Shown: positions 3,198 to 59,037, counted from the stretch's first letter. The stretch: 64,000 nucleotides of DNA from Adineta vaga (GCA_021613535.1 CP075496.1:9672001-9736000); one strand, 5' to 3'. Numbers and translations: made by a program. The notes: generated by a model from the letters alone, not told the origin.

Positions 3198-5595
3198 ATG
3201 ATGAGAATATCTTATATTTTTGTCATTGTTAGTTTTATTCATGCTATTATCAATTACAATATCATAAGTAAGTGAATGTGATCTAAATTTTGAATATCAC
3301 TACGTTCAATGCATTTATTATAGTTTTTAATTCATTTTGTATATTCTAGCGGGACAAAACGAAACTATTAATATTCCAATCCTTACTACAAACGTAGCAT
3401 TAGTAATCCGTATCAATTTCAATAGTGATCCATTAGTCATTTATCTTGGTAAACGTCTTCAAAATGATATCGATTATGCATCTATACCAAACTATAATAT
3501 CAATGGTGATTACACAGGTTTGTATAGTTCAGCTTATACGCCTAGTGGTACACGTAATCTACTTGAACCAGCTATTCAAGTCATTCATGCCGATGGAAAT
3601 CCATCTTTGGATTTAAAATATGTTCGTCATGAACAAGATACTAAAAAACAACCAAATGGAGTAACATTGACATCGATTTATCTTCAAGATCCAATCTATC
3701 CATTTACAGTTATTCTAAATTATAAAGCATATTATGATAATGATATCATTGAACAATGGACAAATATTAAGCATTCAGAAACGGGTGTTGTTCGATTAGA
3801 AAAATATAGTTCAGCTAATCTTTATCTTTCATTAGCACATAGTTACTATCTTACACATTTTCATGGTGATTGGGCACAAGAAATGAAACCTGAACAGATT
3901 CAACTCACTGCAGGAATTAAAACATTAGATACAAAACTAGGAACACGTGCTGATCTATTTCAACCACCTTCATTCTTTCTCGCAATGAATCGGCCTATCA
4001 ATCATGATGCTGATGATGAAGATCAAGGTGAAATATTAGCCGGAACGTTAGCATGGTCAGGAAATTATCAATTACAATTTGAAATTGATCCACTTGGCAA
4101 TTTACGTCTTCTTACTGGTATTAATCCATATGCATCAGAATACTATTTAACAGCTGAACAAGAATTTAGTACACCTAGTTTTTTATTTACCTATTCATTG
4201 AATGGTTTAGGTACAGTTAGCCGAAATTGGCATCGTTGGGCAAGAAAATTTCGTATTCCACAAGGTGAAAATGATCGTTTGACTTTATTGAATAATTGGG
4301 AATCGACCTATTTCAATTTTAATGAAACAATACTAACTTCATTGATGAAAGATGGTAAAACACTTGGTGTAGATTTATTTCTTCTTGATGATGGTTGGTT
4401 TGGTAATAAATATCCGAGAAACGATGATCGAGCTGGTCTAGGTGATTGGCAAGAAAATATTAAGAAATTACCACATGGTATTAATTATTTAACAGATGCA
4501 GCTCAAACATTAGGAATTAAATTTGGTATTTGGATGGAACCCGAAATGGTTAATCCTAAAAGTGAACTTTATGAAAATCATTTAGATTGGGTTATTAAAG
4601 TACCTAATCGTCCTGAATATTATTTTCGTAATCAACTCGTTCTTGATCTATCCAATCCGGCAGTACAAGAATTTGTTTATAATACTGTTGATGGTATGTT
4701 TACGAAACATCCAATGGTTGCTTTCATCAAATGGGATTGTAATGCCGTGATTTATAATGCATTTTCAACATCTAATCCACATCAATCTCATTTATATGTT
4801 GATTATGTTCGTGGTTTATATACTGTTCTTAATCGTCTACGAACAAAATATCCAACAATACCAATGATGTTATGTTCAGGTGGTGGAGGACGAGTCGATT
4901 ATGGTGCACTTCAATATTTTACTGAATTTTGGCCAAGTGATAATACTGATGGATTAGAACGTATATTCATTCAATGGAGTTATTCATTCTTTTTTCCTGC
5001 TATTGCAATGTGTAACCATGTAACCAATTGGGCAAATCAACCCTTAAAATTTCGTACCGATATAGCAATGATGGGTAAATTAGGTTATGATATCGTAGTG
5101 AGTAAATTGAACAGTAAAGATCTTCTTTTCAGTCAACAAGCATTACAAATCTATAGTCGTTTAAAAGATACCATTTGGCATGGTGATCTATATCGACTTG
5201 CATCACCATATCGATTGAGCAGTAATCTAGCATCATTAATGTATGTTAATGAAAAACAAGATCATGCTGTTTGGTTTTCATATTTAACTGTAAATCGATA
5301 TCGATCAGGTAGTTCTGGTCCTATTCGATTGAAAGGACTTGATCCAACAAAAAAATATCGTTTACAAGAAATAAATATCTATCCAGGTACCAATCATTTA
5401 CGTATTATCGATAGCAAAAATCTATCTGGAGATTATTTGATGACATTTGGTTTTGATCCAATGATAGATACACAACGTACAAGTGTGATCGTTGAATTTG
5501 AACTTTTAACAAATGGAGTAGAGGTTTTAACATGTTTTTTAAACAATGTTAGTCATCATCTTCTATTTGTTTTTTATTTATTTATGTTTTCATAA
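3198..5595 (+). CDS. secreted GH36 alpha-galactosidase (bacterial type), 2 exons, hydrophobic C-terminal tail
   Basis: GH36 motifs LLNNWESTYFNF, LFLLDDGWFG, FGIWMEPEMVN, FIKWDCN, CSGGGGRVD, WPSDNTD. Exon 1 (3198-3267, MMRISYIFVIVSFIHAIINYNII) encodes a signal peptide. Intron 3268-3349 (gtaagt...ttctag) is in phase. Confidence 0.9.
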
Positions 5596-56705: not shown

Positions 56706-58649
56706 TTATTTTGATTCCATATCTGTTTCAAATAATTCGTGTTCGTTTAACAATGCCCAAAACATGTCTACACCGTGTTGAATAAGTGCATCAGGAAAAT
56801 CGTATGCTGCATCATGTAGAACAGCCGCTGTTTCACCTGCACCTAGTAGAAACATAGCAGAAGGACATATAGAAGAAAAGACACCAAAATCTTCTGACCA
56901 ACGTGCCGGCACCGACATTAATGTTAATTTTTTTTCACATTTCCTTGCACAATTGATGACATCTTTTGTAGCATGTTGATCATTCATTACTGCATCGAAT
57001 ATATCACAAAATTTAATATCATATTTTATACCCGCTTGTTGCGTTTCACATTCAATTAATGCACGGGCAGCTTCTACCATTGGTTGCATTAAATCATCCG
57101 TAGCGGTACGTAATGTAGCCATGATGACGGCTTCACCAGGTGAAGTACCAAATGCTATTTCACCTAATTTTGCATGAATAATCGTCAATAATCGGAGCTC
57201 TTGCGTAGCAGGTAAACTGCGTGGTAATTGTTCGAGTTTTTCAATTAGGTGACACATGACGCGTGCTGGACTTAATCCTTGATCTGGATGAGCAGCATGA
57301 GTGCAACGACCTTGTAAATGTACAATCATACCGCGTGATGCACATGCAAATGCTCCTTCTCGTATTGCTATTTCACCTAGTGAATGTCCTGGTTGATTAT
57401 GTAATGCATAAGCTACATCAGGACGTAATGATGCATCGAACTTATTGCATTGGATAATTGCTCTTGCTCCATCACCAGTCTCTTCAGCAGGTTGAAAGAG
57501 TAACACAACTTCACCACGAACAGGAGGTTGATAACTAAGTTGTTTGGCAATACCTAGGAGTATAGCCATATGTCCATCATGACCACAACTATGAGCAACA
57601 TTTTCATTGCGAGAACACCATTCTCGTCCATTGCTTTTTTCATGAATTGGTAACGCATCCAGGTCAGCACGTAACATAACTCTTGGTCCTGGTTTAGGTC
57701 CACTAAATACTCCAGCAACACCATATCCACCTAAATCAGTGATAACACGTGTTGCACCAACTTCCTTTAGCCAAGTAGTGATGCATGCTGCTGTCATTTT
57801 CTCATTACTAGACAGTTCTGGTTGTGCATGTAAATAATGACGAATTGTTTCTAAAGATGTATCAATAAGTGATGGAAGCGGCGTAAAACACGATGCTATA
57901 GGTTTCATCTCTATGTGAGCTTCTTCATCATGAGGAAAACCGAATTGTTGCCACATAGCTGATTTGTTCCATTCTTTGATAAAGCTAAAAAATAGAAACG
58001 TTGATCTCTCTCTCTCTCTCTACTATCGATCACAAACATACTTACAGTGTTATCTTACTATTTTCTAATTGGAATATACCAACAACTGTCCATGTTGCTT
58101 TTTTTCTTGAAGCCGTTATTCCTAAAAATACAAAATTTATAAAGATGGTTTTGTAGAAGTTGCGAAATTACCTCTATAAGGTTCTCTACAGTGACTACCT
58201 TCAACCGTATATCTGATTGCTACTTGATTGCCTTTAGCCAGAATGTAATCAAAATTGATGATATGCATATCACCGATACTCTTCATCAATTCTATTAAAG
58301 ATAACTATGAGAAACTTGATAATAATAAATCTATAACTACACACTTTCTTGTTCTTTAGTAAAACTCTCACAGTCGCGAATTTCAGGAAAGGTAGTTGAA
58401 GCGATAAATTCATTTCCAAAAGCCAGAAGATGCGCAACATTATTAGAATTAGCCCGTTTTGGATCATAGCTGGAATGAAATAGATAGAGAATCAACACGC
58501 TTCTGTGAAGGGAGGACATGAAAAATTTGTCTGACTCGTAATAGTTGATCGATAATTTAATTAACATACGAAACATATAGTATAAATATCTACCTGATTT
58601 CTATATATTCTTTCACAATAAGAATATTGTTTGCCTCTTGTTCTATCAT
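56706..58649 (-). CDS. chimeric SnoaL-like ester cyclase (NTF2 fold) plus M20D amidohydrolase (5 exons)
   Basis: Exons 58649-58594, 58469-58345, 58291-58172, 58121-58046 and 57984-56706 splice in phase. N-domain NILIVKEYIEISYDPKRA...ILAKGNQVAIRYTVEGSH...ATWTVVGIFQLENSKITLFIKEWNKSAMWQQFG. C-domain LHAQPELS, LRADLDALPI, SCGHDGH, FQPAEE, HAAHP, SEDFG, LH. Confidence 0.85.
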
Positions 58650-59037
58650 TTTTCAACAACTAGCACACAATCAAAATCAAAGTATCGCATGACATGTTTT
58701 GTTGTTGTATGTTCTATACGAAAGATAAGATTTTATTCGTTGCTTCTCTTCTTAGATTCACTATCGATCTTGATGAGATAAACTTCAAATGTTAAAATTA
58801 TCTCGGTCATATATATGCTTACGAGTATGATATATAATTATATTTACCATCAAGATTTAAATTGATTAAAATTTAACTTTTAAAAACGTACGGTTTATAT
58901 TGCATTGCTTCAATAAATCACTAGCACACAAGTAACGTTTCATAATAAAATATTTCTTGGAAAAATTATTCAAAGAGATCTTAATCTTATTAAATTTTTC
59001 ATTGTATTTATAAAATTAGAAAACTGAACACTAAAAA

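Follow-up and report, generated by a model that had tools for sequence, protein, structure and literature searches.

A conserved in-frame fusion of a SnoaL-like domain with an M20D amidohydrolase in bdelloid rotifers

The window, meaning the whole stretch of 64,000 nucleotides that was analyzed, is part of chromosome 4 of Adineta vaga (C4:9672001-9736000) in a six-contig, 100.8-Mb assembly. When a gene of five exons (56, 125, 120, 76, and 1279 nt) on the minus strand was rebuilt from its coordinates in the window, it yielded a single frame of 551 amino acids followed by a stop codon (Table 1). The coding sequence (CDS) of 1656 nt contains no internal stops, and its four introns (124, 53, 50, and 61 nt), all located within the first 377 nt of the CDS, have GT...AG ends and matching phases. 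Rebuilding thus reproduced the four small exons of the preliminary description, with their splice ends and phases, and the stop-free reading that it reported from a SnoaL-like domain via a linker into an M20D amidohydrolase. The small exons had also been said to encode a complete SnoaL domain; they do encode most of it, but the final ~20 residues are located in the long exon, contiguous and in frame with the M20 part. As the SnoaL tail and the M20 domain share one exon and one frame, the two halves are joined at the DNA level, independently of any splice. In alignments, standalone homologues end 5 to 10 residues past the SnoaL portion of exon 5.

The genes surrounding the fusion gene are of animal type (7tm_1, PAP2_C, LRR, and ART). 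Intron 4 contains about 9 units of a (GA)n microsatellite at 58005-58022, a short distance upstream of the junction-bearing exon. Elsewhere in the window, on the plus strand, an intronless single open frame of 754 amino acids (3331-5592) encodes a complete GH36 alpha-galactosidase (Melibiase, N and C domains), which is probably another acquired gene.

Table 1. Features of the fusion gene, in window coordinates
Feature	Length	Position	Strand	Content
GenBank first exon	14 nt	58892..58905	-	M-Q-Y-K-P; unique match of the back-translated P0001 start
Exon 1	56 nt	58594..58649	-	ATG at 58649, GT donor at 58593; start codon and first SnoaL helix
Exon 2	125 nt	58345..58469	-	SnoaL domain; AG acceptor, GT donor; phase 2 in, 1 out
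Exon 3	120 nt	58172..58291	-	SnoaL core strands
Exon 4	76 nt	58046..58121	-	SnoaL strands
Intron 4	61 nt	57985-58045	-	After exon 4; contains GA microsatellite
Exon 5	1279 nt	57984-56706	-	SnoaL tail, linker, M20D, and stop
Exon 5 start		57918..57984	-	C-terminal SnoaL strand and helix, to the end point of free-standing homologues
Linker	about 15 residues	57873..57917	-	Poorly conserved
M20D amidohydrolase		56706..57872	-	Catalytic and putative lid/dimerization parts and stop codon; no intron

The gene is already present in GenBank as hypothetical protein I4U23_020224 (P0001; 537 aa), with precomputed Pfam matches to SnoaL and Peptidase_M20. This entry, which was recovered by a word search with the long exon, differs from the 551-aa model in the first exon only. 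The 14-nt GenBank first exon is not supported by orthologues, which keep exon 1 instead: A. steineri, Rotaria sordida, and both copies of Rotaria sp. Silwood1 have an exon of equal length whose peptide is similar. Furthermore, the exon 1 peptide aligns with the N terminus of bacterial and fungal homologues, and the I4U23_020224 model, by skipping this conserved exon, omits the first helix of the SnoaL fold. Due to this conservation, the exon 1 originally proposed is preferable to that of GenBank, whose 5' end, judged by these alignments, is probably wrong. Annotations in A. steineri, R. sordida, and Silwood1 cover the M20 part or pieces only; they are truncated and start at a methionine inside exon 5. 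Two corrections to public gene models follow: the first exon given for A. vaga is probably wrong, and the models for A. steineri and Rotaria are truncated.

The N-terminal half scored 31.9 bits against PF07366 (cut-off, 28.4) on P0001, while single exons remained below the cut-off and exon 3 alone gave a weak match (E value of 0.04). Homologues at 48 to 52% identity carry PF07366 and PF12680. An AlphaFold2 model of residues 1 to 140 of P0001, that is, of the GenBank version lacking the true exon 1, had a pLDDT of 88.4 and an alpha+beta cone fold, and its best Foldseek matches were SnoaL2, KstA15, AclR, IdmH, and ChaU (E values of about 1e-8, TM scores of 0.63 to 0.70). The rotifer domain resembles SnoaL2, AclR, IdmH, and the ChaU ester cyclase in its above-cut-off PF07366 match and its predicted cone fold, although identity to solved members is only 15 to 18%. 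Unlike them, it is a member of a distinct "predicted ester cyclase" subfamily that occurs in fungi, amoebae, and soil bacteria. Among distant members of the SnoaL family (P0233, P0130, P0157, and P0222), architectures with 4 to 9 tandem repeats, fusions to an esterase and a metallo-beta-lactamase, or fusions to FHA were observed. Hydrolases are thus among the partners of SnoaL domains elsewhere, but M20 is not.

The long exon matched TIGR01891 with 205.3 bits (cut-off, 153.75) over model positions 3 to 361 of 366 and PF01546 with 108 bits (cut-off, 24.6). The lid/dimerization domain PF07687 scored 15.5 to 16.1 bits in A. vaga, against a cut-off of 21, and 26.4 bits in the orthologue P0008. In alignments with YxeP and ILL2, the CGHDGH, QPAEE, HNQP, and C-terminal LHD motifs coincide with the corresponding active-site motifs. 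From what is known of these two enzymes, we take the motifs to hold the metal ligands (Cys, His, Glu, His, and His) and the catalytic Glu; on that assumption, the full M20D domain with intact ligands that had been described is indeed present. The rotifer protein shares the full-length TIGR01891 match, the CGHDGH, QPAEE, HNQP, and C-terminal His motifs, and apparently the two-lobe layout of catalytic and lid parts with the M20D amidohydrolases/aminoacylases YxeP (Bacillus subtilis, 1ysj), ILL2 (Arabidopsis, 1xmb), and the N-acyl-glutamine aminoacylase 6slf. In contrast, the N-terminal SnoaL domain is found in none of these M20D relatives. The A. vaga genome contains no second copy of either half's subfamily; it encodes two other M20D genes (C2:15336834-15337976 and C3:7301235-7302377) with 31 to 32% identity.

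The fusion is not special to A. vaga, since fused orthologues were found in A. steineri (L007), R. sordida (L009), and Rotaria sp. Silwood1 (L018). In all three, exons of exactly 56, 125, 120, and 76 nt are followed by a long exon encoding the SnoaL tail, the linker, and the M20 domain. Their exon borders are AG and GT, with one GC donor, and the spliced A. steineri and R. sordida frames are open over 546 amino acids. A metagenome contig (L008) also carries fused exons 2 to 5 and a weaker exon 1 match, with intron 4 absent (L008:1551-1741). Based on conservation alone, we infer that exons 1 to 4 would be spliced to exon 5, without an internal start for an M20-only product. In Rotaria sp. Silwood1 (L018:3497-4840), an extra intron of ~90 nt interrupts the M20 half just before CGHDGH, which explains the many 282-aa "amidohydrolase" open reading frames (P0016, P0021, P0024, P0029, and P0033). 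The earlier statement that introns occur in the cyclase half only is thus accurate for all four introns of A. vaga but does not extend to Silwood1. In a further open reading frame of 434 amino acids (P0010, from an ERR11630394 Logan contig), the start of SnoaL exon 2 is followed immediately by the linker and M20; a deletion in another bdelloid, or an artefact of read-through there, might account for this arrangement.

Since A. steineri, R. sordida, and Silwood1 carry this fused gene with the exon lengths unchanged, it is neither an assembly artefact nor recent, and by these sequence comparisons the fusion had already formed when the Adineta and Rotaria lineages diverged. The annotations of the three orthologues, which call the M20 part or pieces only, might raise the suspicion of a chimeric assembly or of neighboring genes wrongly merged into one. 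However, those truncated models simply begin at a methionine within exon 5, and the SnoaL tail and M20 are located in one exon and one stop-free frame in every species. As four independent assemblies and several metagenome contigs are also concordant, we give such an explanation practically no weight.

Ratios of nonsynonymous to synonymous substitution (NG86; dS of 0.7 to 1.5, near saturation) were 0.11 to 0.17 for the SnoaL domain, 0.15 to 0.21 for the M20 domain, and about 0.55 for the free linker, which is 16 to 44% identical between species. Both halves are under purifying selection, and the fusion has been kept with both of its domains throughout the Adineta-Rotaria radiation. The A. vaga copy is located on a long branch, with 63 to 71% identity to A. 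steineri and R. sordida, while those two are 78 to 84% identical to each other. This copy may be evolving fast, or it may represent a different, old paralogue.

The two halves point to different sources in separate trees, which the preliminary description had proposed as a check. The closest nonrotifer relatives of the M20 half are Modicisalibacter and Halomonas proteins (54 to 56% identity). In a maximum likelihood tree of 41 rows, a rotifer-type clade (support, 100/100) was sister (100/97) to a Halomonadaceae clade (100/99), and this pair was nested inside other marine Proteobacteria. This position among nonanimal sequences argues that the M20 half was acquired from a proteobacterium near Halomonadaceae. 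Basal in the rotifer clade (92/79) is an unfused M20 gene (P0013), which is intronless, encodes 379 amino acids, and starts where bacterial M20s start. Its contig (L022) is AT rich and carries an NHL-repeat gene of a kind expanded in A. vaga, along with a divergently oriented Cu/Zn-SOD gene 135 bp upstream of P0013; no SnoaL gene was found on it. The best A. vaga match to this NHL-repeat gene (C2:15340692-15341036) is located 2.7 kb from the M20D gene on C2. Given >165 NHL matches, this closeness may be due to chance.

When 1.84 billion representatives were searched exhaustively with HMMER for the SnoaL half, only 194 matches at an E value of 0.001 or better were returned. A profile word search detected the subfamily in many fungi (lichen-forming fungi, black yeasts, Aspergillus, Fusarium, and a chytrid), in Willaertia and Protostelium, and in bdelloids, and a genome scan detected it in the genomes of 50 bacterial species, including Mycobacterium, Nostoc, Stigonema, Calothrix, Acidobacteriota, and Nitrospira. 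Bdelloids were the only animals among the named matches. All bdelloid copies formed one clade in the SnoaL trees (support, 97 to 99), which was placed on the fungal/protist side and split from an all-bacterial clade with a support of 99/95. Branching among the eukaryote groups does not resolve.

These placements suggest that the SnoaL half, of fungal/protist type, may have been horizontally acquired, with vertical descent as a further possibility. In the latter case, SnoaL would be a patchily retained eukaryotic gene, and only the M20D gene would have been transferred and fused to a resident gene, as in the N4CMT-chromodomain fusion. The grouping of the bdelloid clade with fungi, Willaertia, and Protostelium rather than with bacteria is compatible with this scenario, as are the four conserved introns and the bdelloid precedent described previously (PMC8885841). 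However, bdelloids are the sole animals among the named matches of a family that is otherwise fungal, bacterial, and amoebal, which is the usual pattern of bdelloid acquisition, and the tree is without resolution among eukaryote groups. We therefore regard vertical descent of the SnoaL half as rather unlikely and acquisition from a fungal/protist-type source as the better reading.

Unfused SnoaL genes, which had been suggested as something to look for, were found in Didymodactylos carnosus, in Rotaria sp. Silwood1, and on three metagenome contigs. The bdelloid SnoaL clade consists of this standalone group and of the fused group, and the split between them received a support of 72 to 93. The standalone group itself (91/83 to 99/96) comprises a 160-aa D. 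carnosus protein (P0335), the metagenome loci L029 to L031, which are intact, and the Silwood1 locus L015. Exon 5 was identified in four of these loci (L015 and L029 to L031); in each, intron 4 is at the common site and the stop occurs at the same residue, a few residues past a conserved GFP-x-EE motif and near the end of nonrotifer homologues. The D. carnosus protein has a similar tail that ends one residue beyond the other standalone copies. The Silwood1 copy keeps all four intron positions, while L029 (2296-2613) is without intron 3. Along with the absence of intron 4 from L008, this indicates that introns have been lost as well as gained in this gene family. The Silwood1 locus (L015:4001-4726) also contains one stop in the junction codon between exons 2 and 3 and another, a TAA, within exon 3, both of which are evaded by odd splicing in the 136-aa model P0131; this copy is probably a decaying pseudogene.

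Overall, a true in-frame fusion whose halves are of different evolutionary sources is supported. A single transfer, in which one donor supplied either the finished fusion or SnoaL and M20 as an operon pair, would be consistent with a junction that looks as if the short spacer between two genes arranged head to tail had been read through, and with a SnoaL end and an M20 start that match the termini of free-standing homologues. However, the halves are located in different parts of the tree of life, and M20 was found within 6 kb of SnoaL at none of the 50 bacterial loci. Likewise, there is no SnoaL gene beside the Modicisalibacter M20, where the upstream gene encodes DUF2489. Among proteins of 295 to 940 amino acids sharing words with the SnoaL part, no SnoaL-M20 fusion other than P0001 was found, and the long matches of the representative search were multi-SnoaL repeats or esterase/metallo-beta-lactamase/FHA fusions, none of them with M20; these architecture searches cover this SnoaL subfamily, not all SnoaL-like domains. 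ESM Atlas returned M20-only clusters, and a literature search found nothing on a SnoaL-amidohydrolase pairing in rotifers. Within this scope, the pairing is as unfamiliar from elsewhere as it had first appeared, and a single transfer is very unlikely.

With no fused or adjacent pair found in donors, and with unfused copies of both parts present in bdelloid or bdelloid-like DNA, the fusion appears to have taken place in the host, as originally supposed; on these comparisons, the rotifer lineage is the most likely place of the join. The split of 72 to 93 between fused and standalone SnoaL and the basal position of the unfused M20 (92/79) leave room for the unfused copies to be secondary, derived from the fused gene by partial duplication or fission, rather than parental relics. 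Such an origin could account for the moderate support for reciprocal monophyly, for the decay of the Silwood1 standalone copy with its two in-frame stops, and for the DNA similarity between standalone and fused SnoaL, which ends exactly at the junction. In contrast, the end of the standalone SnoaL falls at one and the same residue in four loci, near the natural end of nonrotifer homologues, and is nearly matched by the D. carnosus protein, while the standalone M20 starts like its bacterial counterparts and is basal in its clade. Moreover, no significant M20 remnant was detected downstream of the standalone Rotaria copy in comparisons with shuffles (P values of 0.04 to 0.5). A secondary origin of the unfused copies is thus improbable, and even if it were true, the fused gene would still require an origin by fusion.

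Composition and introns had been used previously to argue that the M20 half arrived later. The M20 half is GC richer, as described, in raw terms (0.40, compared to 0.34 for the SnoaL half and 0.30 for the window), but its GC content at third codon positions (GC3) is not raised (0.19, compared to 0.26 for SnoaL); most other long open reading frames in the window range from 0.11 to 0.29, with one outlier at 0.43. The excess is located in codon positions 1 and 2 (0.58 and 0.44). As GC3 is host-like in both halves, both are fully adapted to the host, and composition is silent on the order of arrival. GC content as a clock for a younger M20 half was therefore rejected, and the later arrival of M20 cannot be read from it. 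Under uniform placement, the chance that all four introns would fall within the first 377 of 1656 nt is about 3 in 1000. The occurrence of standalone SnoaL genes with common intron positions and of a standalone M20 without introns fits the joining of a gene with introns to one without, while the intron pattern dates neither arrival. Integration into the host is evident from the introns, the animal-type neighbors, and the host codon usage, all of which are present.

Taken together, the fusion is confirmed as real, old, and conserved, in agreement with the core idea of the preliminary description though not with its timing and GC arguments. We suggest that a SnoaL gene of fungal/protist type, already with four introns, would have been present in the bdelloid stem lineage, and that an intronless M20D gene would have been captured from a proteobacterium near Halomonadaceae. 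The latter would then have been joined at the natural SnoaL C terminus, the likeliest route being loss of the SnoaL stop with M20D located just downstream. This account as a whole, a fusion in the bdelloid stem of a four-intron fungal/protist-type SnoaL gene with a captured proteobacterial M20D gene that has been kept since, is in our judgment probable.

The protein has no hydrophobic N-terminal signal, by inspection, and its domains suggest a cytosolic enzyme, dependent on metal, that hydrolyzes N-acyl or amide small molecules. Cleavage of the N-acyl or amide bond would fall to the M20D part, and the SnoaL part would perform a second step (cyclization, hydroxylation, or isomerization) or hold a hydrophobic substrate. 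A bifunctional activity could be envisaged from this pairing. Its most specific form would be a two-step enzyme, in which M20D frees the amine or acid from an N-acylated compound and the tethered SnoaL domain cyclizes, hydroxylates, or sequesters the product; we put this forward tentatively, as more doubtful than probable by a wide measure. If true, it would provide a channelled activity present in no donor, perhaps for detoxification or for horizontally acquired bdelloid secondary metabolism.

A comparable case is N4CMT, in which a bacterial N4-cytosine methyltransferase is combined with a chromodomain in a gene that has conserved introns and is kept across bdelloid families (PMC8885841). As in N4CMT, the gene for a bacterial enzyme would have been captured by a bdelloid ancestor, fused, and kept across families with conserved intron positions. 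Unlike in N4CMT, the partner domain is itself probably foreign, being of fungal type. The product also differs, as N4CMT is a chromatin protein, while the SnoaL-M20 protein is a predicted small-molecule enzyme.

Bdelloid rotifers contain many foreign genes and serve as the animal model for gene acquisition on a large scale; most of the acquisitions described in them are single foreign genes. Here, two genes that differ in their foreign or patchy origin appear to have been welded into an architecture found nowhere else in our searches. The fused product has been kept under selection across sequenced bdelloid genera, and both unfused parental forms can apparently still be sampled. Transfer, domestication, and fusion would thereby become directly comparable as steps within one gene family, and the gene is also one that could readily be expressed and assayed.
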